This document shows positions 19,775 to 52,850 of a stretch of 64,000 bases of DNA, one piece after another; within the stretch, counting starts at the first letter, position 1, and the number at the start of each line of letters is the position of its first letter. Below the pieces are notes generated by a model. That model was not told the DNA's origin. It made no database searches and saw only the letters and a list, made by a program, of their open reading frames with translations. Both the position numbers and the translations under genes were made by a program. The stretch is from Anthoceros angustus (lineage: Eukaryota; Plantae; Anthocerotophyta): assembly GCA_010909165.1 (NCBI GenBank), contig MU008152.1, positions 496,001 to 560,000 on the forward strand, read 5' to 3'.

Positions 19775-19816
<42 letters not shown>

Positions 19817-21285: not shown

Positions 21286-21349
21286 GCTCCACATGGTCGC
21301 TTCTACTCTGAAGTCAGTGGTCGAGCTCTGTTGCAGAGCTTCAGGATTC

Positions 21350-22201
21350 CCACGAGAGCGACGGCACCTGCTATGACTGGAATCCAAAGTCGTCTTCTCG
21401 AGACCTGGTTCTGTGGGCATGAAGTTAGAAATATGGACTGCTGCAAAGGGTGCACATCATTTGAGAATGTGTAGCGGAAGCATCACATCTCAACAACAAT
21501 AGTGAACTTTTCTTACCGTCGGTGTATCAGCTTCCTGTCCTTTATCACTGGCCTTGGGCTGGGCCTTTCCTGTGTCACTGGCCTTGGGCTTGGCTACAGT
21601 AGCAGCTCCTTCATGGGTGCAGTTCCCGGCCTCTTCTCGATAGGTCTAGGCTGGGAAGGAGGAGACATCTTTGCCGGGACATCTGCACTCCGTTTGTCAT
21701 TGACAACTGAAGAACTTGTCTTTGCTGGAACCAGAGTCTGGCTTCCATTTGGATTTGGTTGAGACGGCACAACAGTCTTCCTTGGACCATCTCCAGCTTT
21801 CTTGTCATCAGGGTGTGACTTGCCTGTAGCAACAGGTCCCTTGGCCGGAGCAGGTCTCTTATCCCCTGGACTCACAGGTGCGGTTGAGACAACCACTTTT
21901 TCAGGTGCACCAGATTGGGGAGCTGCAGGTGCTGTTCTCAAAGGCGGAGAAGATCCACCCTTCTCAGCTGTTATCGACTGCATAGGTGCAGCAGGTGTTG
22001 CCCTGGACGTTGTACCCACCATGCTCTGTTCCCGGGTAACAGGCTGGACAACGGGAGTTGTTGCTCTGCTTTTGGCATCTGTCAGCCTATTCTCTGCTGC
22101 AGGTTGCTGTGAGGGAGGAGGCACCACGCTCGGTAACAGGTCTCCACCTGTAGCCTTGTCGGAAGCATTAGGAGCTACCGTCAGAGAAACATCTGCACCT
22201 G
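21350..22201 (-). other. ectopic near-identical copy of 7700-8550 (CH-LysM exon 3' part and intron)
   Basis: Same sequence and orientation, bounded by short shared sequences TTC and CTGCACCTG. Confidence 0.93.
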
Positions 22202-23240
22202 TAGAAAAGTCCTGACTGGCCTGCTCACCTGAGAATTCACGCTCCACATGGTCGCTTCTACTCTGAAGTCAGTGGTCGAGCTCTGTTGCAGAGCTTCAGG
22301 ATTCGCTTGATAGCATAAGAGCAGCTGCAACCTCTGTATATTTCGATTGTGGAGTAAACGTAAACTACTACTACAAAATCAAAATGAAATATCATTTTTA
22401 CTTCCGGCGAGCTGATCTCCCAAGTAGAACATGATCCTTGAGAGCTCCAACAGTCTGGAGTCTCCCATGAGACCTGCATGCAACACCACAATCTGGTTTC
22501 AGTGCATGACATGCTGCGCATTGCTTGCACCTCAGGAGAAAAGTACATGAACACTCTGAAATTTGTGAATCCTTGGAACGGAATCTACTCACTGGGAGAC
22601 GCAGCGTTGCACGCAGGTTCCGGACGAGACCTGGAGGCTGTACATGTATCCTGCTTGCCAGGCTCAATATCCTCAACCTGGAGTCTCTGGACTGTGGTAG
22701 GCCAAGCAAGCGGATTCCCGGCCACAAAATACATCCACCTCCATTTCTTCATTCAAGATTACCTGTCCAGCTTGCGTCCTCTCCTCGCACACTGGAGCCG
22801 AGCCAGGCTCATGATCTCTCTCTTCCAGATCCGGAGCAGTCTGTGAATTCACAGGCTGCTCAGGATTTGGAGCCGGCCTGGTTGGATCGCGTCCACAGCT
22901 GGACTTGAATGAAGAAATGCAGTTGGATGTTTCCTGTGGCCAGGAATCCGCTTGCTTGGCCCTGCCACAGTCCACAGACCCCGGGCTTGAGGATATCAGG
23001 CCCCTGGCAAGCAGGCGTAGTCCGGGGTCTCGTCCTCAACCTACGTATCCAGCTCCTTCTCGCGGTAAGTTGATTCCGTTTTCCATAGATCCACAAATTT
23101 CAGGGCATGCTTGTCTTTGCTTATTTGTCTGATGCTTACTCAGGTGTGTACAGATGTAGAGGGCATAGCGAAGGGAAGTGGCCCGGATGTGAAATTACAG
23201 GCTGCTCAGGATCTGGAAGCGAGGGATTATGAGCCTGGCC

Positions 23241-23783
23241 TGTCCGCGCGCTCTTCCTCCTGGCCCGCACTGACGAGCATGCCCTGAGGCCAGATCTCAT
23301 GTTGGGCTCCCTGAGCCCCGCCTGCACCTCCTCCACCTCCTCCACGCGATTTTCAGCTGCCTTCCGCTCTACATCGGGAGAATTCAGGGCCTCCTTCTCC
23401 TTGCCTGGAAGCTTCCGTTTTCACATTGTACGTTCTTCCTCTGCCTCTGAACTGTGCCACGAAGGCGAATGTGGCCCAGTCTACTTGCAGACCTCTGGCC
23501 GTGGCGATGGCACCTCTCGCAAAGGACGCGCTCACGATACTCCAGCCTTCTCTGCCAGGATATACCTTGTTGCTCAGGCTTTTCAGGAATGTGCGCCCCA
23601 TCGTGCGAGCCTTTTGAGGTTGATACCTGCCTTGCAGGAGCCGAACTCCTCCACCAACCTGCCAAGGCACAATTCGCTCAGAGTAGCGGCTTCTTGGATC
23701 CAGGCCTCTGTCGTTCAGGCCGATGCAGAAGTAGGCCCTGTCAAGCGCGAGCCGCTTCCTTCTGGCGTCTTCCAACCATGGCG

Positions 23784-23819
<36 letters not shown>

Positions 23820-23856
23820 TCCTGCGCTTGCTGCTGCATTGGTCGCTCCATGTCAC
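23241..23856 (-). pseudogene. unknown repeated family, copy A2 (frameshifted duplicate of A1)
   Basis: Matches 19215-19850 with several 1-3 bp deletions. Confidence 0.75.
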
Positions 23857-24474
23857 GCCCCGCTCGAGTCAGGTCTTCCCAGCCCAGCCGCCTGCTTTTC
23901 GGAAGGAAGGAAGCGGCTGGACACGGAAGTTCACGATCCCCACCCCGCCCAATTGAGTTAACGGTTCCCGACGACGGAAACCCTGCATTTGTCCTTTGGT
24001 TTCTGCATTGTCATTTCATGAGTTGGACGGGTTGCGGCTGAAGCGGGTCGTGAAGTTAGACGGGTCTCGACCGTCCAGCGTGTGAACAGGGCTTCATTTG
24101 ACCCCGTCCCCAGCTCCGTCGCTCGGTCTCGGTCCCGTCCCCTGATTGTGTAGAAAGAACGGTTCAGCGTGGTTACGACTCGTGAACTCGCTGGACACGC
24201 GTCAATTAATGAGAGGATAATGCGTTGTGAGCGGGGTAATCGGTTAGTAAAGCCAGCTTCTCATGGAACGAGGTCAAGTGTTCGAATCCCGTTTCTAGGT
24301 TCTGCAAAGGATAATGCCAGGGTTTCCTGCACGTCTGGAGGCTGTTAACCCAGAACTGGGCGGGGATAGCGAACTTCAGTTGTCCAACCTGCCGCCTCCC
24401 TTCCCTATTGGCGCCAACTGAACGCAGGCGGCTTGGGGTTGGAAGACCTGACCTGAGCGGGACCGGGCGTAGGC

Positions 24475-25572
24475 ATGGCGCGAGCAATGCAGCAGCAGCA
24501 GCAGCAAGAGCAGCAGCAGGCGATGGCGATGGCGATGGAGATGGAGATGGAGATGGAGATGGAGATGGAGATGGAGATGGCGGTGGCTGGAGGTGGCGCC
24601 AGGAGGAGGGGTCCTGTGCTCGAAAGGGCCCACTTCTGCAGCATGGGCCTCAGCGACCAGGGCCTTGATCCAAGAAACCCATCGCGGGATGGAATTGTTA
24701 GCCACCAGGACTTGGCGGACGAGTTCAAGTGGGAGGGCAAGGGTCCCATCCACCTCACACGGGCTCTCACAATAGAGGTCCCATTTCTGAAAACCCTGAT
24801 ACACAAAGTATATCCTCACAGAGGAGTGAATTGGAGCCAGGGGAGCATCGCCTTTGCCAGAGGCGCCATAGCCACGCGCAGAGGTTTCCAAGTGGACTGG
24901 GCAAGCTTTGCCTTCGAGGCCCAGTTCATAGGCAGATCGGCCCAGAAGAGGAGACATGTCTACTCTGTGAGGACAGCTGCTTCTGCCTCTGCTCCCAGGC
25001 CAGGAGAAGGAGAGGTCGCCCGGAATGCTCCCGATGTGGCGCGGGAGGCGACTTTTGAGGAGAATCGCGCGATGGAGGTGGAGCATGAGAGCCGGCCTCA
25101 GGGCATGCTTGTCTGTGCGGGCCAGGAGGAAGCGCGCGCGGACGAGCCCGGGTCTGGATCTTACTCCCAGATGTACATGGGACTGAGCCACATCCAAGAG
25201 AGGATGAATAGGCTCTACAGCAATGTCCTCGCAAAGTGGCCAAATCCTAACCGGATGCTTACGCAGATGAGTACAGAGGGCAAGAATTCACAGGCTGCTC
25301 AGGATTTGGAGCCGGGCCCGGTTGGATCGCGTCCACAGCTGGACTTGAATGAAGAAATGCAGTTGGATGTTTCCTGTGGCCAGGAATCCGCTTGCTTGGC
25401 CCTGCCACAGTCCACAGACCCCGGGCTTGAGGATATCAGGCCCCTGGCAAGCAGGCGTAGTCCGGGGTCTCGTCCTCAACCTACGTATCCAGCTCCTTCT
25501 CGCGGTAAGTTGATTCCGTTTTCCATAGATCCACAAATTTCAGGGCATGCTTGTCTTTGCTTATTTGTCTGA
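24475..25572 (+). CDS. unknown repeated family, copy B2 (365-aa ORF); further exons to ~26.55 kb
   Basis: Core LERAHFC..GLDPR..DLADEFKW..IHLTRALTIEVPFLKTLIHKVYP..FARGAIATRRGFQVDWASF. Downstream 25.6-26.75 kb is an inverted homolog of 17.9-19.1 kb, with donor CCG|GTGAGT (~25938) and acceptor TTTTCCACAG|GTGCAG (~26350). Confidence 0.72.
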   Translation: MARAMQQQQQQEQQQAMAMAMEMEMEMEMEMEMEMAVAGGGARRRGPVLERAHFCSMGLSDQGLDPRNPSRDGIVSHQDLADEFKWEGKGPIHLTRALTIEVPFLKTLIHKVYPHRGVNWSQGSIAFARGAIATRRGFQVDWASFAFEAQFIGRSAQKRRHVYSVRTAASASAPRPGEGEVARNAPDVAREATFEENRAMEVEHESRPQGMLVCAGQEEARADEPGSGSYSQMYMGLSHIQERMNRLYSNVLAKWPNPNRMLTQMSTEGKNSQAAQDLEPGPVGSRPQLDLNEEMQLDVSCGQESACLALPQSTDPGLEDIRPLASRRSPGSRPQPTYPAPSRGKLIPFSIDPQISGHACLCLFV

Positions 25573-28008
25573 TGCTTACTCAGGTGTGTACAGATGTAGA
25601 GGGCATAGCGAAGGAAGTGGCCCGGATGTGAAATTACAGGCTGCTCAGGATCTGGAAGCGAGGGATTATGAGCCTGGCCCGGCTGGACCGAGTCCACAGG
25701 TGGACTCGAATGAAGAAATGCAGGTGGATGTCTCTTGTGGCACGGAATCCGGTTGCTTGGCCCTGGCACAGTTCAGGGACCCCGGGGTCTGAGCATATCA
25801 GGCCCCTGGCAAGCAGGCCTAGCGTACAGCCTCTAAAGCTTCGTGTGGAACTGAGCCAGGAGGGACGCAAGCTGTACATGCAGCCTCCGAAGTCTCGTCC
25901 TAAACCTGCGTGCATCGCTGCTTCTACCGGTGAGTTGGTTTTGTTCCATGGATTCACATATGTCATCTACTTCGCTCCTCAAGTGCAAGCACTGCGCAGC
26001 ATGTCATGAACTGAAACGAGATTTTTTTGGTGTTAATTGCAGGTCTGAGGGGAGACCCTAGACTGCTAGAGCTCTCAAGGATTATGTTCAACTTGGGGAA
26101 ATCATCTCGCCGGACGTAAAAAAAAGTGATACTTCACTTTCGCTTTGGTAGGGTGAGTTTACGTTTACTTCACTGGAACCAAATTCGAAATTTTAGAGGT
26201 TCGAAATATACAGAGGTTGCAGCTGCTCTAATGCTATCAAGCTAATCCGGAAGCTCTGCAACAGGGCTCGACCACTGACTCAAGAGTAGTAGCGGCCATG
26301 TGGAGTATCAATTTCTCGGGTGAGTAGGCCAGTCAAGATTTTTTCCACAGGTGCAGGAGAGCTTTGGCAAGAAGATGTTCGAGATGAAGCTGTTATAAAG
26401 GTGGTGACGGACAGTCTGGGAAAGATGACTCTGGAGGGGAACAGCGAGGGGAGCAGGAGGATACTGGGGATGGTGAGGAGGAGTCGGTCTGTCGGATGGG
26501 GAGGGAGAGATAGAATGGCAGTGACGGATGGAGTGAGAAATCCATGAAAGGAGCAGGGGCTGGGCAGGGAGAGGGTAAGGGGGCCTTCAACAATAAACAT
26601 CAGCACGCCGTTGACATCCTTTGAGGAAGGAGGCGATAGAGAGCCTGTTCATTGTTGGAAAGGCTTCCCATTTTGGGGAAAGTTCCTTGTTGGTCTTGAT
26701 TCAATTCTCTGCAGTTTACAAATTTTTATATTGTAATCAGTCTTCAGACATAGTTTAAAGCATGCAAATCTTGCAGAATTCTAAAATTGCAAAGGCGGCT
26801 CCTCTGATCCGCTCACCAGATGTCGTGCTTGGGTGGACCTGGGATAGCTGGCTTGCCTTGGATGATCCCTGGACAGCCTGCCCTGCTCTTCAAAGCCGTG
26901 GCTCCCTTTCCTTTAGTTGGAATAACCAGCAGTCCAACTTGATTGCTCGCAGACTGGATCAGGCCTATATCCCATAGAGTACAGGCTCACTCCATCATAC
27001 CTGGTACCTCCCTATCTGACCATGCTCCGATTATAATCAGTCTGGCCTGTACCGAATCCGGGGTTATCAAGCTCTGTCCAGGATACTAGGAAACCAGGGG
27101 TGGAAGAAAGGATCATGGAGATATTTCAGCAGACGAGCTCTATGTCTGAGCTATCGGGCCTTGACAAGCTTCTATGTCTGAGCTATCGGGCCTTGACAAT
27201 CTTCTGAAGGGATGAGACGTAGTTCATCCTTGAAATTCCTCTGCAAGCTTGGTGCTGATCTTGATGATGATGATGATTTCAGGAGAGTCTCGCGCAATGA
27301 CCACACATAGGAGGTCGGCGCGCCCAGGTAGACCGAGACGACTTTTACTAGACTAGGACGACTACCCAAACAGGCTCAAAGATTGTTATTTTTGCCCGAC
27401 CGGGCTGAAAGATTGTGAAAGGATGGTTCCCCATCCCAGCATTGATCCGCCCGTTCGCATGTCATCTGGTGTATGCGCACCCGATGACCCCCCCTTAAGA
27501 AACGAGGAACGGAAGAGGAGCAGGACCTGAGAAACTCCTTGGCCAACCTTCAGCGTGCTGCTGAGCTTGGCCGTCTGTGTCCTGAATCCGCCGCCTTGCT
27601 TCGAGAAGCAAGATTTAAACTGGAGTGCTTCGAAGAAGCCAGAGCGCAGGGCAAACATAAAATGGGCCCCTGAGGGAGACTTACCGAGGAAGTTCTTGTT
27701 TAACACTCGCCAGCAAAGCCGTAAACGCAACCTGATTCCTCCCTGCCGGACGAAAACGGTGTCAGGCTGGATGACCCTGTGGCGCTCAAAGATTTATTGG
27801 TAACCACTTCAAGGAGTTCTTTGCCAGTACTGTTAAGCCTGACGAGTGGGAGCGGCTTTGGGCAGAGGCTCATGATCTTTTCCTGCGAAAGTTTCGGCCT
27901 CTCAACCCTTGCTACTTGACAAGAGCTCACTCCTCGCAAGTCCATAAAGGCATTTCGGCTTTGAGCAGAGGCTTGGTTTCCTCTTCTTTCGTGGTTGCCT
28001 TCTTCTGG

Positions 28009-28510: not shown

Positions 28511-30869
28511 TAGGCGATCGCGGGGCTAGTCCTCCTTGGACGGGTATCTCGTCTTACTACATAATGTCTTCGTTTCCAGCATAAGGCCTTTCACTGGACT
28601 TCTCTCTTGGCAAGTCCCTGGACCAAAACAATTCTTTACTTGCTGTTATGCGGGCTCTTGCAGATATCTGGGACACAAGGGACTATGGGATCCACTGTCA
28701 ATGAAAGCTTGATCACCCTCCTCCCCAAACTCAACGCGGTTGAATCCTTCTCAACTGGAGGCCTATCAGCTTGCTTAACACTATCTACAAGCTCATGACG
28801 AAGTCCATGGCCAACCGCATTGCATTGTTCCTTTCCTCCATGAATGGGTTGCTCCTGAGCAGAGGCCTCATTCATCAAAAGCGCTGCATCCTAGACAACC
28901 TGCCTATGGTGCGCGAGGTGAAGTGGTGGCTTCACAAACAAAAGGTTCTAGCTATCATCATCTCTCTGGATTTCCGCAAGGCTTACGGTGCCATAGAGTG
29001 GCACTTTATGTGGCGCTGTATGCGCCAATACACATCGTGAGCATTCAGGACCCTCAGGGAAGGAGCCCAGAATCTCATGTCTGGCGGACGACACTCTGTT
29101 GTTCTCCAAAGCTGATGACAGATCCTCTCCACCATGTTGCATATTGAGCACACATTTGGGGTTCTCTCTGGATGTAAGGTCAATAGGGGCAAGACGGTTA
29201 TGCTTTGTGTTAAGCTGGGGATGATGTCCCTGCTTCCGTCAGACACATCCACAAGGTGCAGGGTAACGACTTTCACAAATATCTGGGTATCCCACTGCAA
29301 GAAGGGGATGAGAATGGAGATCGGAAGATATGTTCTCTCCAAATTCATTCGAAAGGCTCGCGCAATGTACAAGTATTACAGCTGTCCACTCCTGCGAGGG
29401 CCATCGCTATTAACCATATCCTTACCTCCTCACTTTGGTACTATGTCTTTGTCTGAGCTCCGTCTAAGGCCGACATGGCCAGACTGAAGGAATTAATCTT
29501 GCAGTTTCTGTGGGGCAGGGGCCCTTGGAAGCAGGCAGCAAGGCCCATAGAGTGGCCTGGGCTCCTAACTCAGCCTAAGGCCGTTGGGGGTCTCGGTCTT
29601 GTCGATCCGTTTGTAAAAAGCACGGCTTTGCATGGGCAATGGATTCTTCAAGCCCTGAGCCCGGTTGATTACCCATCGCCTTCTGCCTGTTTTGATGACC
29701 CATCAGGGTCCCCTCTGTGGCATGCGATTTGGAGCAGTTTCAAACGGGCTACTAACCTGTGTTCCTGGACCCCGCCCGTTAGCAGAGCACAGGCCCTGTC
29801 TCTTCCCATTCACGGATGCTGCCATGTATGAAAACCAGAACTCCGTATCCGCATGAGTGGCTCTCAACATATAAAAAATGCCAGCCTGCAGGGTCTGTAC
29901 GCCATTCGGCACTTGTGGAACTTAGCCACTGAGCGTTGGAAGCATCCTGACGACCTTATGTACGAGTTCAACATCAACAGCCGTTGTGCCAAGTTTCTCC
30001 TGTCATCTGTTCAGACGGCTTTGGCAGACGCTGTTTACTCCGCTTTGGAAATGGGGATGAGGTTACCTTTGGTGATTTTCCATGTTACTGGGCGATTCGG
30101 TCTTCTATATCACCAGACAGGTTGGGGTTCTTGGCTGACATCTACAAACCCAGCTCGAGGAAGGGATCCTCTCTTACACAGAGGGAGGCTGTTTTACAGG
30201 GTGCTTTTCTGTCTCCTGTTGTTATTCTCTTCGGTGCTGCTACCTCTCGATAACGGCTCCTGAGACATGAACTTCTGTGCAGCCCCGAATGCTGGGGGCC
30301 GGGGTGCTTTTGTTGGGCTGGCATGACTGATGAGTCCTCACTTGTTATCTCTCCTCACCACTGGAGATGCTGCTGCTACTGGCACTCCTGCCACTAGGTC
30401 CCTCCTGAATGTGAGCACCTCATTGAGCTACCGACTACTTATCAAAGAACTGCAGCCCAAGGGCAGAAAGCCGCTGACTCCCCGCCTCTTGTTGAATTCA
30501 CCCACTCAATTACACATGCTAAGAATGCTTTGGAAAAGAAAGAGGATCATCGAGAAGCACAGGTATACCATTTGGAAGATGTGGCAGGCGGCTTTGCCGA
30601 ACTCCGACAGGTGGAATGGGCTCTTTGAGGCGGCAGGTGTGCCCACCTGCATCACGTGCGATCAGGGTTCAGAACATAAAACCGAGCATATCTTTTTTAG
30701 GTGTGACTTCGCTCGCGCCGCATGGAAAGCTGTTGAAGCCTGGCTCAGACGGGTTCTCCACAACTCTTCCATTGTGCTCTCAGAAACTACTGCTCGCTTC
30801 GGATACCGGCCTTTCCTCCAGCTTCAGTGGTGGCCGGTTCTTTGGGCTGCCACCCTGCAACACCTCTGG

Positions 30870-30930
30870 GTACACTGGAATCCTCCGTGTACACTGGAAT
30901 CCTCCGGGTACACTGGAATCCTCCGGGTAC
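30870..30930. repeat. 19-bp tandem repeat x3 in the LINE 3' region
   Basis: GTACACTGGAATCCTCCGK repeated. Confidence 0.85.
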
Positions 30931-32907
30931 TGGGTACACCCTCCATCTGGGAATCCACCCTCAATGGAGCAGCACAGACCCAGGCCCCTCGCCCACAACA
31001 CAGCAAGCAAGCTTGAAGCCTGGCAAGCAGCGGGCTTTCTCACCACCGTCAGACCTCTCACATGGAACTTCCATTGTCGGCTCTGATTGCTCCCTCACAG
31101 AGCGCCAGCAGGAGGATTTTCAAGGCCTTCTCAACAAAGGCAGGGACTTGGCGAAATTTGGTGAGACTGGAGGCGCCTCCGTCAGGCACCTCATTCTGCG
31201 CAAATGCGTGCTGGGGGGGTTTTTCTTTGGTCCTAGGGCCTGAGATCATGTGAGATGCCCCTTTTCTAGAGGCTCTGTTGTCCCCCTCCTGCTTCCTGCC
31301 TGCCCTTCCCGCCCGGAGCCTTTTCTGCGCTCCTTCGCGTGTCTCCTCGTTTCTAGCACGATCTTGTTTCTTCCGATTCTACAAAGCTCGGGTTCTCTAA
31401 AAAAAGAATAGAAATCTAACAAACTATTCTGCTATGTTGATGCTTCTAAGCACGTCCTGGAACATCACACTGTCCTCCCCCTCGTAATCGCTGAACTGGA
31501 TGACTTCTCCCCTGCCTATTGTTGATACCGCGGATCTCAAACAGCCCTTTCAGCTGATCAGCACAGCCCGCAACAACCTTGCAAGTGATGTGCACAAGTT
31601 CGAGGACAAGCTTAAGACCTCAGCCATTACAGCCTAAAATCACCACTCACCAGTGCACTGGGTGCTGTGCCGAGGAGGTATTCCTGCTCTCCTACACTTG
31701 AAATGCACCTTCAGCGAGGGCCTGCAGGACAGATCTACACCCTTAGATTGCTATGCTGCACCTACAACTAGTTAGGATTGCAGCTGAGAACTTGACACAT
31801 ATCACTGGAGAGCACTGACAGACAAGAGGTGTGTTTTGGACCTGGATTTGCAGGAGGTGCAAGCTAATCTTGATACAGATGCCTCGATGACTGCCAAAAC
31901 ATCTGTCAGGTGCTCCCAAACAGATGAGCATCCCATAGAGAGAGCCAAAAGAGAATATTACGCTTCAGTCACAGCTCCCACGAACTCCATGGAAATGAAT
32001 ACCTTGCCTGGTTCGCCCAAGCTAGCCAAGCTGAAGCCCGTCCATCAGCTCAGTGTGCCTGTCCGTAACATTGGTGTGGTACAACTCCAGATCGAAAAAC
32101 ATGAGCCGTGCACTGAAACGGCCAGAGCGGACAATAAGGGAGCGGCGAAGACCACTCACATGTGCATAGCCATCTAGCCCCTCCGGCAGGGCAACATTAG
32201 GTTAGAACTCCTTGCTCCCAAGTCCCAAACCGAGAGCTTGAGCTAGAACCTGCTGCCAGGGTGTCCAGTGGATATCAGTTTTAACAGTGGACAGAGGCCT
32301 GGATCCAAGAAACCGCCACACTGAGCGAATTTTGTAAAAGCGATCAGAATCGCTGTTGATCCATGGGCGGTGGCCTGTGCCAAAGTGCGCGAGTCTGACA
32401 GCAGAACATGAGCACGTGCGTAAGGCAAGAAAAGGATAATGTATTGATAGTCTAGAGAAATACTTATAGTGTCTCCTAGAAAGCGGTTTAATAACCGTCC
32501 ATATGTGAAAATACAAAACTACCTAATAGCCGTTGGTAACAGCCCAACTAAAGTAGCATGACTTAGCTGTTAGGCTATTCCCAATACTCCCACTTAGTTG
32601 CAGGATTTCCAAAGTAGGAAGCTAGACTGAAATATCCGTCCTTCGCATGCAAGCTGGACGCGTACAAATGATGAACTGAGAAAACACATGCCAAACGAGG
32701 TTGTGTTCCAGCTCACTTCTGTTCTCTTATGCTCCAACTCTCCTTGAGATCGGCTCTCATGGCTACCTTCAGTGCCATAGAGTTGGTCCTCCACTTGATC
32801 ACATGTGAGTCTTCACTCTCTACTTCCTCCGCAGCTGGCTGTCCTCTACAGCTGGATCCCGGTGCACAAATTCTCGGAGCGCCAATCTTGTCTTCACGCC
32901 TTGCACT

Positions 32908-33500
32908 GTGCAGCATCGAACATCGTCTCCTTCTACTCTCCAAGCTCGGCTCCTCTTCCAAAGGACAGCTCTAAGGCCAAGGCTTCTCGCAGGCTCCAGA
33001 ACTTTGAAGGTGTTCGCAGCTCCATCATCAGAGTTCCACAAGATGAGCTGCAAGGACACTGAGACGAAGAGCAAGAGAGGAGTAACAAGTGTGGCTTTGC
33101 AGCCCACACCTGAAGAGATGCAAGCATACATGAAAGTGCCTCTCCCTGTGGATTCAGACGACGAAGTCTACATGGAAGAGGAATGAGGCTACAGACCTTC
33201 TACAGGTGTAAAGGGTGAGAGAAAGACAGCGCAGAGAAATGAAGGAGTGGAAGACACTAAGACTCCTAAGAAAGGAAAGGAGAAACCTGCACCTCACGTG
33301 ACAGGAAGTGGGATACAAGTGCTATATGGGTGTAAGTACTTCACTATTGGAAAGTATGCATGAAACCTGACAGAGTTGTGATGCTAACTACTGCTGTGGT
33401 TGCTGCAGCCCTGAATGAAGAATTCACGAAGTCTGACAAGGCAAGAGAAGACCTGAAGAAAACATTCATCAAACAGGGCAAGCTCCCACTGGGGAATTAG
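32908..33500 (+). pseudogene. antisense spliced accessory ORF in the copia 1 3' region
   Basis: The frame of ORF 32908..33186 continues past one TGA to donor T|GTAAGT (33331/33332). Intron has a CTAAC branch point; acceptor CTGCAG| at 33408. Last exon SLNEEFTKSDKAREDLKKTFIKQGKLPLGN stops at 33500, 12 bp from the pol stop. The 5' end is unresolved. Confidence 0.6.
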
Positions 33501-34804
33501 AAGCAGCAAACTCTAGTGGGCAGTGCCCTTCACAGCTACAGCTGGGATGTCACTAATGCCAGCAGATGCAGTATGCTTTTCATGAACAGGTTTAGAAAGA
33601 GCCTTCGTGAGAAGGTCAGAAATGTTATCTTCAGTAGGTACATAAGACACTGTTACCTCACCAGACTCGGCAGCTTGCCTGATAAAGTGGTGACTTATCT
33701 CAATATGTTTGGATCGTGCGTGAAAAACAGGATTCTTGCTCAGTGCGATAGCTGATTGGTTGTCACACCACAAAGGTGTTGCACCTGGCTGCAGTTGTCG
33801 AAGCTCCTTCATAAAACTCCGAATCCATATAACCTCCTTAGCAGCTTGTGTCATGGCTGCATATTCTGCCTCAGTAGAGGACAGACATATAGTTGAAAGC
33901 TTCTTGCTACTCCATGAAACAGCAGAGGTACCCAGAAAGGTGCAATAAGCAGCAACTGATTTCCTAGTATCAGGATCCCCAGCCCAATCGGCATCGCAAT
34001 AAGCTGTGAGATCCAGGCCTGTCTTACACTTTGTAAACCGAAGACCTTTCCTTGATGTCCCTTGCAGATATCTAAAAATCCGTTTGACAGCAGTCCAGTG
34101 TCAAGGACCAGGGTTCTCTAAGAACTGACTTACAACTCCCACTGCCCGGGTAATGTCCATTCGGGTCCAGCTGGAGAGATAAATGAGAGAACCTACTGCC
34201 TGCCTATAAGGGGTCCTGGACATAGCTAGTTTTTCCTCCTCTGTAACAGGACACTGCTCTAAGGAGAGTTTCTCACCTAAAGACATGGGTGTCCCTACAG
34301 GCTTCGCATCTTGCATGTTGAAGCGCTGTAGCAGCTGATGCACAAAGTGCTCTTGATGTATATCAATCGTGCCATCAGCTCTATTGAAGTGAAACTGAAC
34401 ACCCAGGGAAAAAGTGAGTTCTCCTAAGTCTGTCATCTCAAATTTAGAAAGGAGGATAAGCTTGATGCGGGCCATAAGGGTAGCAGAGTTACTAAACAGA
34501 AAATTGTCATCAACATAGACGGTAAGAATCAAGAAATCTGTCCCGTCCCACATGATATAGACACTGGTGTCTGCATCAAGGCAAGTAAAGCCTAATTCCA
34601 ATAGTAACTTGTGGAATACTTCATACCAAGCACGGGATGCTTGTTTCAGACCATAAAGTGTTTTAAGCAGCTTACACACCTTGTCCTCGTTGATGATGTA
34701 ACCCTCTGGCTGACACATATAGATATCTTCCTCCAGAAGGCCATTCAGAAAGGCTGTTTTAACATCCAGTTGGTGCACAAGGAGATTGTAATGGACAGCT
34801 AGGG

Positions 34805-37943: not shown

Positions 37944-39024
37944 GGGATATGCTCACAGCATGGTGCGTTGCACCTGTGGACGTCTCTGAGAAGACTTGAC
38001 GAGCATAGGGGTAGGCTCCAACTTCGAAAGCTCCTCACACAACTGATTGAGGTCGTGAATGCCGTCTGTAAGCTTCTCAATGAGAATCCACGTGATCTCA
38101 CAGGGTTCTGGCTGAAAGTTCATCCTCCCACAACCGCTCAAGGCCGATGTGTGTCTTGGAGTCGTGGATGTCCGAGGAAAATAGGCACTTTGTGTCACAC
38201 GGGTGAGTGCTGGTGTGACAACCGAAAAGTGTTGACGGCGATCGCGATTCCTCCTTGTTGGTGCTACCTCCCTTCTCTCCGCAGATCTGCAATCAGGGCA
38301 AACCACCTGATGCTCTGAACAAGCAAAGGAAGAGCGCTTCACTGGTTTGCTGAGAAATCTCGGAGGAGGAACTGGATTCCCTCCGAGGGTCTTGGCATCG
38401 TGACTCCAGGGTGCCTAAATCAGGGTGAATAGGCATCCATCGTGCACGCCCAAACCACGCTCTGATACCATAAAAGCGATGTAATCAGCCATGTGATCCA
38501 TGGGCTGTGGCTCAAAAGCAGTGCGAGTCTCGACAAAGAACATGAGCGGCAAGTGGAGCAAGAAAAGGATAATGTATTGATAGTCTAGAGAAATACTTAT
38601 AGTGTCTCCTAGAAAGCGGTTTAATAACTGTCCATATGTGAAAATACATAACTACTAATAGGAAGCAGTTTCAACTAAAGTAGCATGACTTAGAGGCTAT
38701 TCCCAATATTTTGCCTTGGCAGGATTTGGTGGAGGAGTTCGGCTCCTGCAAGGCAGATATTAAAGCGGATTGGAGTGCGAAGAGAGCCACACCGCGCTAG
38801 GAGGAGAACGAGCATGAGTGCAAAAACAAGTGACTGCCAGTTACATGTAGTTTGTTATACATCAGAGGTCCCTGGTAACAAGTTAGGCTTGAGAGTAACT
38901 GCCTATGAGTCTAGCATGATAACCCTATCAGCATTGTTATTAGGGTTATGATATCTCCTTTACTCCCTCTTAGACGAGATAGGCAAAAAGGGATAAAAGG
39001 GAAAAAGGACACCACGGGTTCAAG

Positions 39025-39960
39025 GTGAACGCGCGGGCATCATTCTACGCTCAAAACTGGCCTACCGGGCTTCTGCAAGGATGCCTATGCCACAAACTTC
39101 ACCGCTGGGATTATTGGCCCATTGTCGCTTATAAGATGGCGCTCCCTCTCTCCACGTTCCAATGCATGAGAGTGGTGGCGACTGCTAAAGTCCTCATCTT
39201 CTGCCTGATCCTCCTTTTGGTGCGCCTCTGGAAATCCTGCTCCCACTGCTGCTTCCTCATGGGCACTATGTCGAAGGGCCTTGAGTGTCTCCACTGTGGA
39301 AAACGCTGGCTCCCAGCTTCATCATTCACACCAAGGCAGTGGATTCTGCACTCCATTAGCTGCGAGGCCCTACCTGTAGACATGAGCAGAAGCAAGACCA
39401 AGGAAGAAGAGGAATTTGTGCTGGAGGCGAGGACAATGGCTGATGCCATGTTGCCTAACCCTCGTGACAGGATAGAGATCTGGCACACTCCCAAATGTGT
39501 GGCCTTCCCTGTGACTGAGGCAGACAAAAGGCTGAGGATCACCAAGGAGGAGTACAAAGACCTTATGAAGAGAGCCTTCCCTCGAGAATATGGAGAACAT
39601 GACTACTACTATCACCATGTGGTCAGCAAGGAGAGCATTGTGCGGGCAGAGAAGAAATAAGCCAGCATACTGCTAAGAGCTACTATGATACCGGGAGAAA
39701 CTCCCTCTGCTGATGAGAATTCTGAACAAGGTAACAAAAAGAGGAAGGAGAACCCGACGATTACATGTAAGTTGTGCTTCATCCACTCGCTTCTCTTCCC
39801 TTCTGTCTGCACAGTACCAATCCAAAAGGTCTGAATCTAACCAACCCTATATACTTTGCTGTCTACAGCTCTGCTAGAGGAAACAAAGAAGATAGCAGAG
39901 TTGCTGGAGAAGCTTAAACGGGAACAGAGACTGTGGTTACTCAAGGATTTAGGACGATAG
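39025..39960 (+). pseudogene. antisense spliced accessory ORF in the copia 2 3' region
   Basis: The 211-aa ORF 39025..39660 continues in frame past one TAA to donor T|GTAAGT (39766/39767). Intron has CTAAC; acceptor CTACAG| at 39868. Last exon SLLEETKKIAELLEKLKREQRLWLLKDLGR stops at 39960. Confidence 0.65.
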
Positions 39961-42410
39961 TGTGCACACATCGCCAGGTTTTACCTTTAACCGAGAAATG
40001 CACTTATGTAGGCCACCAATAAGCATGTCTCGCAAAGTGCTGGCTTGACAAGGTTGGTTAGCAAATCAGCTATGTTTTCCCCTATTGGGATGTAGCTAAC
40101 CACTACTTCTCCTGTATCAGTAGCTTGCCTAATAAAGTGATGGGTAATCTCAACGTGCTTACTTCTTGCATGAAATACCGGATTTCGAGATAGAGCTATC
40201 GCAGATTGGTTGTCACACCAAAGTTGAGCTGGTCCAGGTGCTAGCTGCTGCAATCCCTTGAGAAAAGAACGGATCCAAATTACTTCCGCTTGCCCCATAT
40301 TCCCCGCCTCAATGATAGAGGCGAGTTGTAAGCTTCTTGCTACTCCAGGATATTGAGGAACCACCAAGGATGTTGCAGTATGCTGCCACACTACGACGTG
40401 TGTCTGGATCACCAGCCCAATCAACGTCACAGTATGAAACCAAGTGCAATCCATCTGGTTGTCTACTATACTGCAAACCATGCCTTGCAGTGCCTTTTAA
40501 ATAACGAAAAATTCGTTTCACTGCGGTCCAATGAACCTCTCTTGGGTTCTCAAGAAACTGGGACACATTGCTAACTGCTCGGGCAATGTCTAATCTGGTC
40601 CAAGCTGCTAAGTAGATCAAGCATCCAACTGCTTGACGATAAGGACACTTACTCATCTCATCCTTGTCTCGCTATGAATCGATCTTCTTTTGACAACTTC
40701 ACCAAGGCTATGGCGGCAACAGCCTACCCTCCATGTTGAAACGCTTCAAGAGTTGCTCCACAAAGTGCTCCTGATGTATGTATATGCTGTGGCCAGAATC
40801 ACCAAACTGGAATTGAACCCCAAGTGAGAACGTAAGCTGTCCTAAATCCGTCATTTCAAAACGTGCAAGCAGAACCTTCTTAATCCTATCCATCAAAATA
40901 GCAGATGAACAGAAAAGGAAGTTGTCGTCAACATATACAGAAATTATGATGAAATCATCTTGGTCCCATAGAATATAAACAGTAGTATCAGCTGCTAAAC
41001 ATGTGAACCCAAGCTCTATCAAGAGTGCATGAAAACTTTCATTCCAGGCTCTGGATGACTGCTTAAGTCCATACAGCGTCTTAAGTAACTTACATACTTT
41101 CCTTGTGTCCTTCACATAACCCTCAGGCTGGGCCATATAAATCTCCTCTACAAGTGAACCATGCAAAAGGTCAGTTTAACGCCTGAAATATGTAATAAGC
41201 AACTATGTCACAGCTAAGGCTGCAAAATGCATGGCTTTGACGACAGGAGCAAAAGTCTCATTGTAGTCAAGGCCCTCCACTTGGCTGTAACCCTTAGCTA
41301 CCAAACGAGCTTTGTATCTTCCAACTTCTGTCTGCTCAACTTTCTAAACACCTACTTGCGTGCAATCGGTTTCCGCCAGAGGTAAATCAACCACCAAGTC
41401 TCGATGCCATGAGAGAGTTGTACTTGATTCTATGGTCGCTTACTGCTCGGCTCGTCCTGATGCCAAATAGATAAGTGGCGTTTCCCAAAGAGGAAGGAGG
41501 TGGAAAGAAGGGTTGATGAGGTTTAGGAACATGGCGAGACAGGCCAGCAACATAAGGACCAAACCATTCACTCATAGGACGTCTAGTGCGAGTAGAGCGT
41601 CTAAGGACTGGTGAAGTGTCTATGTGTTCTGGTTCAGGCTCTGTAAGGTTTGGTGGGTCAGGAGGATCAGGTTCATGATCAGGAGCCGAGACAGAATCAG
41701 ATTCGGTGGTTTCTGAAACAACAGGCAAATCTGCTGCAGGAGAGTCAACTACTAATGGGAAAGGAAACTTATCTGGAGGCTGGACAGGAGGCCAGACAGG
41801 AGGTGCTGCAGAGACGAATGGTGGTGAACTACCCCCTGAAACCGCAGAAGATGAATCTGAGTCATCCACATCAAAGACAGTAACGTCAGCTGGATCAGGA
41901 GAATCAGTAGCATCATCAACACCATGGATGGAAGGAGCTGCCAAAGAGGAATTGGGTTGGAGAATAATCTGATGTCGACAAAAAAGGGCATCCTCATTGA
42001 ATACAACACTACGGGAAAAGGAAACTTGTCGAGTCTGAGGATCAAACAACTTGTAGCCTTTAACATCATCAGAATAACCAACAAATATGCGTCTTACAGC
42101 TTTAGGATCTAACTTAGAACGCAAAGCTGGTGGGATGAGGGCATAAGCAGGAGCTCCAAATATACGAAGATGAGAAACTCGAGGTTTCTTACCAGTCCAC
42201 CTCTCATAAGGGGTCACCAGACCTAACTCCTTGGTTGGTAGGCGATTCTGAACATAGTTAGCAGCACATAAGGCTTCCGCCTAACATCCTCTTTCAAAGA
42301 AGGATAACTAGAAAGGCTGCCTCCAGAAACTTCGTTTCTTTCTCTCAGAAACGTGATTCTCCGCTTGTGTGTAGGGAACCGAAGTCAAGGCCGGACTCCT
42401 CCTCACACAA

Positions 42411-44772
42411 AACACGATAATTTTTGAAGGGGGGATACCCCTTCGCCGAGACAAGACCCCTTGTCACGAAGAACACCTTACCTAGAACAAAGATATGTGC
42501 CCTACTTTGATAATGCACACACCTTTCCGAGGTCATATCTTTGATAAAAGATGCACTTTCAAGTCTACACCCGAGAACCGGAGCATGAGGGTGTGGGCCC
42601 GCTTATGCTTTAGTAGAATGCATAGAGGGCTGCCATTTTCATATGTTTATTACAACCGAAAACTTTTACTTTCAAGTGGTGGAACACAATGAAAACAATC
42701 TGCATTAGCGGAGTCTCATTTAAGTGGTCGTGAGAACATTGCAACAAACAATCAAGGAGGAAGTGGTCATCAAGATCGACAATAGCCATTCAAGAGTGCG
42801 GCGACTCATCCATGCCTTAAACCGAGTCAAGTACCACCGCCATATTCGGAGGCGGTCCATATCCTCCGCCTCGGTTGTCGCTCTCCTCCATTGCTTGCCT
42901 TCAATAGTATCATTCTTGGGCCCGGTCCGACGGTCGATCGCCACACAAAGATCTAGGGTCTCACGACCTCATCCAAAAGGTCGCCAATCGTGGTCTTCAA
43001 CCTTCCGCACTCAATGCAACCACTTGGGCTTTAAGGCAATGCCAACGTCCTTAAAATGAACAAAGTTAGTTGCCCATGCGCCCATGCAAGCATCCTTAAA
43101 ATCAACAAAATTGAACTATTGAGGAGGCACGAGGTTTGAACACGAAACCTATTCGTTACTACACTTATTTCCCAAACACTAGACCAACAATCCATGGTTG
43201 AGTACTCTTGAGGCGCTAAATATTTATTTTTGAAGACAGGAGGAGGGCGCTGGCGCCGGCGCCCATGGGCAAGGCATGGCGTGTTAGGGGAGGGCGCGGC
43301 CGGCGCCCAAGGACGGCAGGGCGTGGGCGCCGCCGCCGGCGCCCATGGTGGTGTGCTGGGGAGGGCGCCTGCCACCCGCCCCAAGGTGGTGTGTAGGGGA
43401 GGGCGCCGGCCGGCGCCCATGGGCGGTGTTAGGGGAGGGCGCCGGCGCCCATGGGCGGTGTTAGGGGAGGGCGCCGGCGCCCATGGGTAGGGTGTAGGGG
43501 AGGGCGCCGGCCGGCCCCATGGGCAGGGAGGCGCCGCCGGCCGGCGCCCATGAGTGGCATGTCAGGGGAGGGCGCGGCCGGCGCCTCCTTAGCACCATCC
43601 TACGGTGCATACGGTGAAGCTAGGGGGGACAAGAAGGAACGTATCCTATCACCGATGGAAGGTGTGGCCCATTTGGTGAAGGGTTAAAAGATTTGCATCC
43701 ATAGGTGACTGAAGAGTATAAGTGGTGGGAAGCCTGTTGGACCGGAAGGAGATTGCTATTGTGGAGAATAACATTGGGCTAGTGCTACGTCATTCTTGGA
43801 AGTGGTTTTCACGCGAAGTGGATCATACAGACCACTTCAAGTGCGGATGAAGCTTTGCTAGATGAGGCATTATTGAGGGACCTCCCACGCGTGATATGTA
43901 TTTGGGGGCATATCAAAATGCGGAAGGCAACGGAAATGGCACGGATGAATGGGGACATAACGGAACCGAGAGGGATGTTTCGCGCAAATACGCATAACAG
44001 GCCATTCGGATTGGGAGGTCATTGACGTGAAGCTAAACGCACCACGACCTCACTTTCTTATCCACTAGTATCGGACCGAGCACATAGATGCGTATGAAGG
44101 AGATATGCAGAACACATAGTCCGCCAGAGTGGTAACCCATCCGTCCAATGCCGAGGAAAAAGGGAATAAGATCCATTACCTAAAAACATACAGGAGGTAT
44201 TTGTGAATGAAACTATCCCAGACATGGGTTTGTGTTGAACGACGGAAACATCCGTATGTGGACAAAAAGCGATAAGGGATAAGCTCATGAGTTGCGTGGC
44301 TTCATACAACCCGCGAGTGAAAGTGTCGTCAAGATAGTGATGACAATGGAGAAGTTTGGACCAAGTGATGACGATGGATTGAACTCGGGATGAGTGAAAC
44401 CGAAATCTCGCTTTTTCCGGGTCCCAGTTAATGTTGTAAGTCCTAGATGTTTCGTGTTAGGAAATACCGTCTGTGGCTTTTGTGGTGTCATAACAAAACC
44501 ACATTTCCATCCCAAAATCGAGTTTATAATGTTTGCTCAGAACGGCCTTCCTCACCGCTCCTACTTTGCATCATTTCCCTAGGTTGGAGCCACCATTGGC
44601 CACAAACATTGCTAGATGGAAAGTAGTAATTTTTCCGGTGACACCTTTTTTCGAGCTGTTTTCCTGAATGCCTTCAAAACGCTGTTTTAGGGCCCATCAA
44701 AAACCCCCTTCAGAGATTATTTGCGGAAAACCCCCTTCGAGATTATTAACCCCCTTCAAAAATTATCGTGTT
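42411..44772. mobile_element. non-autonomous DNA transposon nested in the copia 2 integrase
   Basis: Terminal inverted repeat AACACGATAATTTTTGAAGGGGG at both ends, 4-bp direct repeat ACAA at 42407-42410 and 44773-44776, subterminal AACCCCCTTC repeats at the right end. Integrase sequence resumes on both sides. Confidence 0.85.
43240..43590. repeat. GC-rich degenerate tandem block inside the nested DNA element
   Basis: Recurrent GGGGAGGGCGCCGGCGCCCATGGG units. Confidence 0.8.
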
Positions 44773-47028: not shown

Positions 47029-48768
47029 GCTATCAGCAGTGATGGCGGGGATTCAAATCTGACGAAGTCCTCCTCCTCATCTTGCCAGCCTCAAGAGCTT
47101 TGTGTGTCAGGCAATTTAAGTGAATTTGTCGGATGGATTCACTTAAGCCGTCGAAAAGATCTTGCAGGCGCTCGACCTTGGAGTGTAGGTCCTGAATCTC
47201 CCTGCCTTCTTGTAGTCGGGGTCTGAGAGCAGAATCTGTGCGCGGTTGGTGATGTGAGAGCCTCTTCTAGAACAAGGTATGTCTGGGATGGTCTCTCGTC
47301 GGTGCGAGGTGACAGGAGATTGCAGAGAGGTAAGGTATTCCTCTTCACGACAATCCAGCAGCAACTCCTCCGACTCGGGTGTGGGAGTTCTCCTCACTGC
47401 TCCCCCACGGATCACAGATCACAACCCTACACTTCGGCATGATTCCCTCCGTGGCATCGACCTAAGATTGCCATTGCTCGCAAGTCAGATCGGGATGCAT
47501 ACAACCAGGCTCTGATACCATAAAGCGGATTGGAGTGCGGAGAGAGCCACACCGCGCTAGGAGGGGAACGAGCATGAGTGCAAAAACAAGTGACGGTTAC
47601 ATTTACAGAGTTTGTTACATACTGTAGAGGTCCCCAGGTAACGGTTAGGCTTGAGAGTAACTGCCTATGAGTCTAGCATGATAACCCTATCAGCATTGTT
47701 ATCAGGGTTATGATATCTCCTTTAGATATAAACCTCAAAAAGGCTCGCACGATAGGGCGCACATTCCTGAAAAGCCTGAGCAACAAGGTGTATCCCGCAG
47801 AAGGCCGGAGCATCGTGATGGCTGCCTTTGCGAGAGGCGCCATCGCCACGCTGAGGCCCCAAGTAGACCGGGCCACATTCGCCGGCATGGCCTGTGAGTA
47901 GAATGGAGGAGAACCAGCAGTGATTGACGCCTCCTTTGATAGCATCAACGGTGTTTGTTTGTACCGATAGTGAAGCCATGCATATGACTGGGTCTCACGG
48001 TCCTGTGCCCGTCCTCCGTCCCGCTGGTCCTCTGCGCCACCGTCCTCTAGTCCTCTGGTCCTCTGAGGCACGCAGTTGAGGACGAGACCGCTGACGAACA
48101 TGTATGCTTGAGTCCCCGGCCGCCCGGCCTCGACGAGGCTCTTGAAGCCGACGCTAGGCTCGCTTTGCGGGCCCGATATCCTCGCACTCGGTCCCCGAAT
48201 CGCCAGGCCAAGCAATCGGATTCCTTGCCTGTGGGACATCCACCGCATTTCTTCGCTCAAGTCCACCGGTGGACTCGGTCCAAATGCAGTCAGCTCATGA
48301 TTCCTCGATGGCGGCCTATGATGATAATCATGGACATCGTATGGACTCTCATGAGTTTGTCCAAGCATCCAAGCCATTCCAACACTCTTTCAGCCCCTTG
48401 ACCCTCCCCCACCGCCTCCGCTCACTATCCTCGATTATCAAAAGAAATCTCCTTTTCTTACGTCCGTGATATGACCTTCCAAGTTAAACATAATCCTTGA
48501 GAGCTCCAACAATCTTGGGTCTCCCTTAGACTCCGCTAACACTGCGATCTCGTCTCGATTCATGACATGCTGCGCATTGCATGGCGATTCACTAGCAAAG
48601 TACATGAAGACTAAAATTTGAGCATCCATGGAAAGGGATTAACTCACCGTATGCCAGTTCGTGACTAGACTGACGCTGTACATGTACAGCCTTGAGTCCC
48701 CGGCCCGGGCCTCGACGAGGCTTAAGTCAGAAGGCCACCGCTTGTGGGCCCGATATCCTCAAACCCTG

Positions 48769-49783
48769 TAGCTGAGCGCGGCGAGGAAAAGAGTAATTTA
48801 TTGGTGAACAAGATGAGGTGAAGTACACAATCGCGCGTAGTTGCAATCGTCGATGTTTTACTGCTGCCTGCTACCATCAACTACCGGGGTATGAGCCCGA
48901 TCTAATCAAACTCGAACCGTGCCCTAGCTGATCCGTGAGCGCCCAGCGCCACTCTGCTCCAACACTCCCCCTCGCTCAGGATCTACCTGTGTCTTCAGCT
49001 TGAAACCGATAGCGTCCGTGCCCAATGCGCGCAGCTGGTTGTGAGCCTATCGTCCAGTACCTGAGCTGGAGGAGAAATGCCGGAGTTGCACTCCCCCTCA
49101 ATTTGAAATTGAGGAAGCTTGACGTCTTCCTCCCAAGTAGGCCTCCTTACTTGTGAGTCCGATGCCGACAACGTGCTTCTTGTGCAGGGGCTTGGGAAGC
49201 TTGCACACCTTGCTCGGATCTTTCACGAATCCTGGTGGTTGTGACATGTCCCTTCCGTAGTGACTTAACCCCCTAGACGGTAACTAGATTACGGTGGTTA
49301 CGCGTTAACCGTCTGCTGATTGCCACCGCCCCGAGACCTTCCAAGAACGATGCTCGAGCTATGCTGTCTCTGCACTTTATGCAGATTGCTGATCTTGGAG
49401 GCGTCGCATTGCTCGCTGGCGCGAAAGCCGCCGGAGTGCGGCGCCGAGGCATCGCGCAGTCCACAAGATCGTTGAATCCCATTGCGGTTGGTTCGTTCGA
49501 GCTCCATCCCGCGAGATCGATGCAGACCACGCGCGCGGAGCCGAGGCGATGCCGAAGAACGGGGAAGGCTGTCGCTCTGATACCATAAAGCGGAGCGCGA
49601 TGCAGGAAAGAGTAATTTATTGGTGAACAAGATGAGCTTTGGCACAATCAAGTGCGTGTAGTTGCAATCGTCTCAACTGCTTTGCTACGGTTCGCTGCTA
49701 CCATCAACTACCGGGTACGAGCCCGATCTAATCAAACTCAACGGCCTTCTGCCGATCCGTGAGCGCCAGCCACTCGCTCAACA
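48769..49783 (-). mobile_element. TRIM-like non-autonomous LTR element, copy 1
   Basis: LTRs 48769-48964 and 49586-49783 (minus strand TGTTG...CCGCTTTA), PBS 49574-49585, PPT GAGGGGGAG at 48965-48973, internal RNase H remnant KLPKPLHKKHV. Flanks CCCTG/CCCGG are an imperfect TSD. Confidence 0.85.
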
Positions 49784-51844: not shown

Positions 51845-52850
51845 TAAAGCTGAGCGATGGCAGGAAAAGAGTAATTTATTGGTGAACAAGATGAGGTGAA
51901 GTACACAATCGCGCGTAGTTGCAATCGTCGATGTTTTGTCATGTCTGCTACCATCAACTACCGGGGGTATGAGCCCGATCTAATCAAACTCGAACTGCCC
52001 TAGCCGATCCGTGAGCGCCAGCCACTCGCTCCAACACTCCCCTCGCTCGTGATCTACCCGTGTCCCCGCCTTGAAACCGCAGCGTCCTGCGCCAATGCGC
52101 TGCACTTGTTGTGAGCCTATCGTCCAAGACTGGAGGAGAAATGCCGAGTTGCACTCCCTCAATTTGAAATTGAGGAAGCTTGACGCCTCCCAAGTAGGCC
52201 TCCTTACTTGTGGAGTCCGGCGTACAACGTGCTTCTTGTGCAGGGCTTGGGAAGCTTGCACACCTTGCTCGGATCTTCACGAATCTCGGTGGTTGTGACA
52301 CGTCCTTCCAGTAGTGACTTAACCCCTAGACGGTAACTAGATTACGGGTGGTTACTGCATTATTAACCATGCTTGGTGAACAAGGCATTGCCGGGCGTCG
52401 TCTGAGACCTTCCAAGAACGATGCTCGAGCTAGCCTTGTCTCGCACTTTATGCATTGTCGATCTTGAGGCGTCAGCTCAAGCGCGAAAGCCGGAGCGCGC
52501 CGAGGCATCGCGCAGTCCACAAGATCGTTGAATCCCATTGCGGTTGGTTCGTTCGAGCTCCATCCCGCGAGATCGATGCAGACCACGTGCGCGGAGCCGA
52601 GGTGATGCCGAAGAATGGGGAAGGCTGTCGCTCTGATACCATAAAGCGGAGCGCGATGCAGAGGAAAAGAGTAATTTATTGGTGAACAAGATGAGCTTAA
52701 GTACACAATCGCGCGTAGTTGCAATCGTCTCGAACTGCTTTGCTACGGGTTTGCCTCTGCTACCATCAACTACCGGGCAATGGTGCCCGATCTAATCAAA
52801 CTCGAACTGCCCTGCCGATCCGTGAGCGCCAGCCGCCACTCGCTCCAACA
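51845..52850 (-). mobile_element. TRIM-like non-autonomous LTR element, copy 2
   Basis: LTRs 51845-52036 and 52642-52850, PBS 52630-52641, PPT at 52037 onward; same site as copy 1 within the duplicated unit. Confidence 0.85.

Follow-up and report, generated by a model that had tools for sequence, protein, structure and literature searches.

[quoted passage not shown]

The extra genes of LTR retrotransposons are the nearest equivalent of the accessory genes of retroviruses; none has a demonstrated function, and the known antisense cases nearly all belong to one plant gypsy group. The locus described here raises the question of whether a Ty1/copia lineage has carried such a gene as well. It lies in a 64,000-nucleotide stretch of DNA (the window) that is eukaryotic and rich in transposable elements, and in which an earlier reading of the letters had picked out an intron-bearing open frame, on the strand opposite to pol, in two elements that we call copia 1 and copia 2. 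From comparison of the two, we think it probable that in this lineage the 0.9-1.0 kb separating pol from the 3' LTR holds an ancestral, spliced, protein-coding antisense accessory gene. If this is true, the presence of an intron-bearing antisense gene in two copia families would mean that the strategy arose or was acquired outside the gypsy group. It would also provide a compact case (about 240 residues and one intron) in which splicing reports expression from the DNA copy and not from the genomic RNA.

Two copia insertions side by side

Copia 2 and copia 1 are complete Ty1/copia insertions on the minus strand, and their boundaries and pol stop codons are as follows.

Copia 2
47521-47724, minus strand: 5' LTR, from the LTR alignment
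38761-38962, minus strand: 3' LTR (202 bp), aligned to the 5' LTR at 47521-47724 with about 91% identity
38756-38760 and 47725-47729: target-site duplication ATATC
47509-47520, minus strand: primer-binding site TGGTATCAGAGC, directly after the 5' LTR
38963-38971, minus strand: polypurine tract, reading AAGAGGGAG on that strand and abutting the 3' LTR
39987-39989, minus strand: pol stop codon, which ends the RNase H region; the antisense gene converges on it

Copia 1
38471-38708, minus strand: 5' LTR
32335-32586, minus strand: 3' LTR (LTR identity about 82%)
32330-32334 and 38709-38713: target-site duplication CAAAA
38459-38470: primer-binding site TGGTATCAGAGC, directly after the 5' LTR
33513-33515: pol stop codon

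As in copia 2, a purine run abuts the 3' LTR of copia 1, and the primer-binding motif TGGTATCAGAGC matches the plant-type initiator tRNA-Met. Together with the zf-RVT domain and the DnaJ-domain ORF described below, this motif suggests a plant-like host, and we do not regard the window as human DNA. Pfam places the domains Retrotran_gag_2, Pol_BBD, gag_pre-integrs, rve, SH3_retrovirus and RVT_2 in that order on the minus strand, with integrase before reverse transcriptase, which is the gag-PR-IN-RT-RH order of Ty1/copia. Between copia 1 and copia 2 the gag and pol proteins are 56-70% identical, the C-terminus of pol (ORF 39987-40481 on the minus strand in copia 2) reaching 70%, and in both elements gag-pol is disrupted by frameshifts and stops. 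The best protein match to pol is 45% identical. A scan of metagenomes with pol returned 80 loci at 30-37% identity, a different lineage that we used solely as a source of unrelated copia controls, and a scan of viral contigs returned no match. Compared with copia 1, copia 2 is interrupted in its integrase region by about 2.4 kb of additional DNA (42382-44770), within which there is a GC-rich tandem array of 32-36-bp units (43277-43585). The window also contains a third copia element, of a different lineage, at 45-4900 on the plus strand; it is cut by the window start, and its short post-pol region is without a notable antisense frame.

The two insertions have the same orientation and lie 42 bp apart, each with its own 5-bp duplication (window 38709-38760). 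When the 42-bp stretch that separates the elements is joined to the flanks on either side, with all element sequence left out, the reconstructed empty site is 90% and 88% identical to 19447-19698 and 23464-23712, respectively, two paralogues that run unbroken across both element junctions. Because the joined site aligns uninterrupted, the two elements must have inserted independently into a single copy of a repeat family. Two insertions so close together in one repeat copy may reflect a target preference.

Anatomy and shared ancestry of the candidate antisense gene

For copia 2, the sequence-only reading had described a long antisense frame, a 102-bp phase-1 intron with a GTAAGT donor preceded by T and a CTAAC branch, and a last exon that begins SLLEE (SLNEE in copia 1) and ends close to the pol stop. 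All of these features are present, and the coordinates given for them are correct to the base. The long frame is a plus-strand ORF of 211 codons (39025-39660) with its first ATG at 39136, and it is free of stops from 38983 onwards (225 codons). The coding frame as a whole, 39136-39960 on the plus strand, falls inside the interval from the LTR edge (38962) to the pol stop (39987) and runs opposite to gag-pol, the arrangement that has been named aORF-3R. Its parts are these.

39081-39134, plus strand: upstream ORF of 17 codons, starting Met-Pro and ending 1 nt before the main ATG
39136-39657, plus strand: first exon as far as the nonsense codon, 174 codons from the first ATG (from the ORF list)
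39658-39660, plus strand: in-frame TAA, 106 nt upstream of the donor, at which the long frame ends
39661-39766, plus strand: frame continued to the donor, 35 codons and the first base of a split Ser codon
39736-39756, plus strand: basic patch KKRKENP
39767-39868, plus strand: predicted phase-1 intron of 102 nt, with GTAAGT donor, CTAAC and CAG acceptor
39869-39960, plus strand: last exon, which completes the Ser codon and adds 29 codons and TAG, ending 26 nt from the pol stop

At the donor, the T at 39766 is followed by GTAAGT at 39767-39772; CTAAC occupies 39837-39841, with its branch A 28 nt from the acceptor, and the CAG of the acceptor ends at 39868. Splicing would join T to CT in a Ser codon, after which the frame reads LLEE. 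Copia 1 has the same layout in strand, position, intron phase, split Ser, last-exon length and an end near pol, which bears out the earlier claim that two diverged elements share one antisense architecture.

32688-32747, plus strand: upstream ORF of 19 codons, starting Met-Pro and overlapping the main ATG (the copia 2 counterpart is 39081-39134)
32729-33183, plus strand: decayed upstream part, with the ATG at 32729, the core at 32853-32981 and the stretch on the TGA side in three different frames
33184-33186, plus strand: in-frame TGA, 145 nt before the donor, with the frame open afterwards
33187-33331, plus strand: frame from the TGA to the donor, 48 open codons
33268-33288, plus strand: basic patch KKGKEKP
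33332-33408, plus strand: predicted phase-1 intron of 77 nt, with GTAAGT following the T at 33331 and CTAAC at 33384-33388
33409-33500, plus strand: last exon, comprising Ser, 29 codons and TAG, 12 nt from the pol stop

Here the branch A is 21 nt from the acceptor, and the split Ser codon is followed by LNEE. Both introns therefore combine GTAAGT, CTAAC and CAG, a branch within 18-40 nt, and a shared phase and position, as is expected of spliceosomal introns. If the intron were retained, translation would meet a stop after 9-22 of its codons in both elements, and the conserved tail would thus be translatable only from a spliced message. The copia 2 frame (39136-39657) also has three-base periodicity, with GC contents of 0.50, 0.41 and 0.66 at the first, second and third codon positions (chi-square p=2e-4). 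Its third-position value of 0.66 compares with about 0.42 in gag and pol and is not the mere complement of their T-rich third positions; it fits either a foreign source for the frame or codon use under different selection.

The antisense anatomy of these copia elements is more than chance. In the copia 2 spacer (1011 nt), a stop-free run of 225 codons was reached by one of 2000 dinucleotide-preserving shuffles; the longest run in copia 1, at 125 codons, was matched by 276 of 2000 and is not significant alone. On both strands of the window (128 kb of strand), the strict pattern GTAAGT..CTAAC..YAG occurs three times, with 2.3 occurrences expected, and two of the three are the antisense introns. 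Calculated from this rate, the expectation of meeting the pattern less than 300 nt from the pol stop, on the antisense strand and in both elements, is about 3e-5. Among the unrelated copia loci from metagenomes, the strict intron pattern was found within 400 nt after pol in 0 of 53, and an antisense run of at least 200 codons in the 1.2 kb after pol in 0 of 39.

Outside short islands, alignment of the spacer DNA of copia 1 with that of copia 2 is essentially random, and BLASTP of the long frames against each other and of the last exons against each other gave nothing significant. Homology emerged only with shuffle-tested local alignment over all copia 1 frames. Four colinear protein patches match on the plus strand.

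Patch 1, the protein start: M-(A)-L-[PQ]-L-S at 32729 and 39136
Patch 2, a core of 43 residues: 32853-32981 in copia 1 and 39307-39396 in copia 2
Patch 3, the basic stretch before the donor: KKGKEKP and KKRKENP, with identity at 6/7/2 of 7 by codon position
Patch 4, the last exon: 9 of 29 residues identical in an ungapped alignment (permutation P=0.0016), with identity at 11/11/7 by codon position

The local alignment of the core scores 60, compared with 26±4.6 in shuffles, and is the highest among 18 frame pairs from both strands; the runner-up scores 40, and no sense-strand pair exceeds 39. In tblastn, too, the core is the reciprocal best non-self match in the window (E=0.002). The score of the last exon is reached by 0.07% of the stop-free 29-residue windows in the whole stretch. 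Over the four patches combined, identity by codon position is 34/35/20 of 66, in which the first- and second-position values are inflated because three of the four patches were chosen by protein similarity, the last exon alone having been defined independently. The intron signals keep the same place and phase, while the introns differ in length (77 vs 102 nt) and in sequence.

Judged on these alignments, the antisense genes of copia 1 and copia 2 are detectably homologous and descend from a common ancestor. What the sequence-only reading took for independent retention in two elements is thus replaced by common ancestry followed by retention, as the four colinear homologous patches indicate. 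Since gag and pol are only 56-70% identical between the elements, the antisense gene would have been carried through a long period of transposition, and the comparison points to a gene that evolves much faster than gag and pol. The accompanying argument for selection holds in part: the patches carry marks of protein-level constraint, but selection can have acted only while the lineage was transposing, both copies having decayed since, and the conservation rests on two comparable copies, each of them defective. The point that splicing of the genomic RNA would leave an antisense intron in place is well taken, as that RNA carries the reverse complement of the splice signals.

Predicted product, decay and competing readings

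We infer that such a gene would be transcribed, spliced, translated and functional, and we envisage its operation in the following way. The antisense gene would be transcribed from the integrated DNA, from a promoter in or beside the 3' LTR, and would read towards pol; its pre-mRNA would lose the one short phase-1 intron, and its transcript would terminate inside antisense pol. Being antisense to the genomic RNA, the intron would not be removed from it and would therefore be copied at every retrotransposition. The product, of about 240 residues, would consist of a hydrophobic N-terminal helix, a Cys/His cluster, a core of the form W-P..F..RQ..LH...C.A ... LP.D.S..K, a basic KK-KE-P patch, and a charged tail of 30 residues rich in Leu, Lys and Glu. 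By analogy with Grande gene23 and the Retand proteins, for which such a role has been proposed, and with HTLV-1 HBZ, the protein most likely acts in trans on the cycle of its own element, in regulation or in nuclear steps.

In the copia 2 protein, a CxxC-x12-CxxC cluster, an acidic run, the basic patch and the Leu/Lys/Glu-rich tail can be made out by eye. Structure prediction, a check that the sequence-only reading had proposed, was informative for one segment: the AlphaFold2 single-sequence model is confident in the hydrophobic N-terminal helix (about residues 10-30) and poor elsewhere, with a mean pLDDT of 45. Database searches were run exon by exon, with the frame pieces on either side of the stops searched apart. 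Pfam detected no family at E<=1 in any of the copia 2 exons, searched separately in a way that would miss a domain spanning a junction, and in the copia 1 pieces the sole match was RAG1, far below threshold (E=0.15, 10.6 bits vs a cut-off of 25). Searched exon by exon with Pfam, neither antisense gene contains Transposase_28 (PF04195). A bZIP domain was likewise found neither by Pfam nor, below E=0.37, in the PDB, again with the exons taken separately, so that one spanning the junction would be missed. The PDB sequence search as a whole gave no match below E=0.37, a word search with the 211-residue frame gave no match, an HMMER search of 1.84 billion representatives gave 0 matches at E<=0.001, and scans of metagenomes and viral contigs with the antisense protein gave nothing. 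Given this orphan status against 1.84 billion representatives, any function found for the protein would be new.

Neither copy encodes the full product as it stands, and both are old, decayed insertions (LTR identity 91% and 82%). In copia 2 the antisense gene is interrupted by a single nonsense codon, with no frameshift; in copia 1 a nonsense codon is joined by at least two frameshifts. From the LTR divergence (9% and 18%) some 1-3 nonsense changes would be expected per 0.7 kb, together with a few indels, and neutral decay since insertion, like that of gag-pol, would give the state of both genes. With both copies dead, the value of the finding hinges on younger copies in the source genome.

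What does not fit easily with decay is the near-equal position of the two stops: they precede the shared basic patch by 25 and 27 codons, and the chance that independent stops would fall this close together is about 0.025. An ancestral stop, read-through or an intron in the 3' UTR would account for it, and we hold this family of explanations to be unlikely though worth keeping in mind. According to the fullest version, the stop is ancestral and the protein ends at 39657 (33183 in copia 1), the intron and last exon then belonging to a 3' UTR through which the mRNA is coupled to nonsense-mediated decay, or forming an extension gained by read-through. The frame is open beyond the stop in both elements, for 35 and 48 codons, as such an extension would have it. 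Nevertheless, one stop per copy is what decay alone would produce at these LTR divergences, and the last exon has a protein-level signature for which a UTR has no need. Moreover, the stop is followed by G in each element, a poor context for read-through. An additional intron that would remove the in-frame stop was rejected as first choice, as inspection by eye revealed no plausible donor-acceptor pair of workable length in either element.

Alternatively, the functional product may be the spliced antisense RNA itself, acting as double-stranded RNA or by transcriptional interference through its overlap with the 3' end of pol and the genomic RNA, with the open frame incidental. Because the antisense stop is 12-26 nt from the pol stop, the polyadenylation site must fall inside antisense pol, so that the transcript overlaps the genomic RNA, and comparable antisense RNAs have been described in other elements (PMC7264820, PMC7175516). 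However, similarity between the elements peaks in one plus-strand frame pair, the third codon positions are the least conserved, and an RNA would require neither a frame of 225 codons nor its periodicity; we therefore consider it quite unlikely that the RNA is the product that matters.

It is also conceivable that the ancestor once picked up part of a host gene together with its intron, and that this fragment has since travelled as a passive passenger of no use to the element. Capture from the host is among the origins discussed for antisense extra ORFs (PMC7264820), and the difference in GC3 between the antisense frame and gag-pol (0.66 vs about 0.42), which is not simply a matter of complementarity, would agree with it. 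Yet no host or other homologue appears among the 1.84 billion representatives, and donor, branch, acceptor, phase, exon length and protein patches have all survived although the spacer DNA can no longer be aligned. Capture could yet be how the gene arose, but it leaves the retention unexplained, and as a complete account we find passive carriage improbable.

A more elaborate proposal would combine an orphan protein, an mRNA whose conserved stop, 106-145 nt upstream of the exon junction, gates output through nonsense-mediated decay or read-through, and a role for the protein in guiding integration to a specific repeat. Guided integration would explain the two same-orientation insertions 42 bp apart; we regard the combination as highly improbable. 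Of the two roles suggested by the sequence-only reading, targeting and anti-silencing, neither draws support from the present results, the sole hint of targeting being these independent insertions. Finally, that a non-coding spacer has acquired an open frame and splice-like motifs by chance is scarcely credible, for although the copia 1 frames are not significant alone and about 2.3 intron-like patterns are expected per window, chance would have to produce the joint place, strand and phase in two elements (expectation about 3e-5), a copia 2 frame that one shuffle in 2000 reaches, and the protein-level matches of last exon, core and tblastn, with the pattern found in none of the 53 control loci.

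Known systems compared and other features of the window

[quoted passage not shown] The antisense ORFs termed aORF-3R include Grande gene23 in maize, RIRE2 in rice, Retand in Silene, PvRetro13 in Phaseolus and the fungal Boty, and a regulatory role is suspected for them, their function not being established (PMC7264820); those of Retand mostly carry a TRP28 domain (PMC11963269). The copia gene resembles them in its position between pol and the 3' LTR, its antisense orientation, its presence in the two diverged elements of the window, its lack of informative homologues, a presumed promoter of its own, and a suspected regulatory or nuclear role. It differs in its host, as aORF-3R elements are Ty3/gypsy (Boty being fungal) and ours are Ty1/copia, and in its spacer, which measures about 1 kb as opposed to 3-6.5 kb. 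Unlike Retand, the copia gene has no TRP28 (PF04195) or other Pfam match. Its predicted, conserved spliceosomal intron is a further difference, none being mentioned for aORF-3R ORFs in PMC7264820 or PMC11963269. An incomplete search of the literature found no antisense extra gene in copia.

By analogy, the closest working parallel is HTLV-1 HBZ, which has been shown to act in trans on the cycle of its own element and which we treat as an analogue, not a relative, of the copia gene. HBZ is a spliced antisense gene of a retrovirus (PMC11963269). The two are alike in being antisense genes at the 3' end of a reverse-transcribing element, in having an intron that is invisible to the sense genomic RNA, and in the predicted order of a basic patch followed by a helical tail. 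They differ in that no bZIP or other domain was detected in the exons of the copia gene, its host is plant-like, the sequences are unrelated, and a first exon or promoter located in the LTR is unsupported for it. The env-like third ORFs of SIRE-type copia and of the gypsy elements Athila and Bagy2 (PMC7264820) also place an extra gene in the interval between pol and the 3' LTR. Those ORFs, however, run in the sense direction and depend on splicing of the genomic RNA for their expression, whereas the copia gene is antisense. In the copia spacers the sense strand lacks any comparable frame, and on that strand the similarity of the two elements does not rise above background.

Several other features of the window were recorded. 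Rfam and tRNA scans of the window were empty. A DnaJ-domain ORF (E=1e-10) lies at 6038-6622 on the plus strand in an AT-rich stretch; its HPD motif reads YPG, and a word search with it found no relatives. Recent tandem duplications, 97-99.9% identical, occur within 7697-25679 and 56042-58573, and the long ORFs in these two regions have no Pfam match. The duplicated units are the following.

8407-9636: three copies of 406 bp
12074-13264 and 13252-14444: tandem pair
18441-22200 and 22193-25679: tandem pair
56042-57312 and 57303-58573: tandem pair

Between 48339 and 54587 there are two tandem units of about 3.1 kb that are 89% identical, with TGGTATCAGAGC at 49574-49585 and 52630-52641 on the minus strand, which suggests that the array is derived from an LTR element. 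Other retroelement remains are a plant LINE-type zf-RVT domain at 30330-31016 on the plus strand and a gypsy-type RT-RNase H at 62845-63633 on the minus strand.
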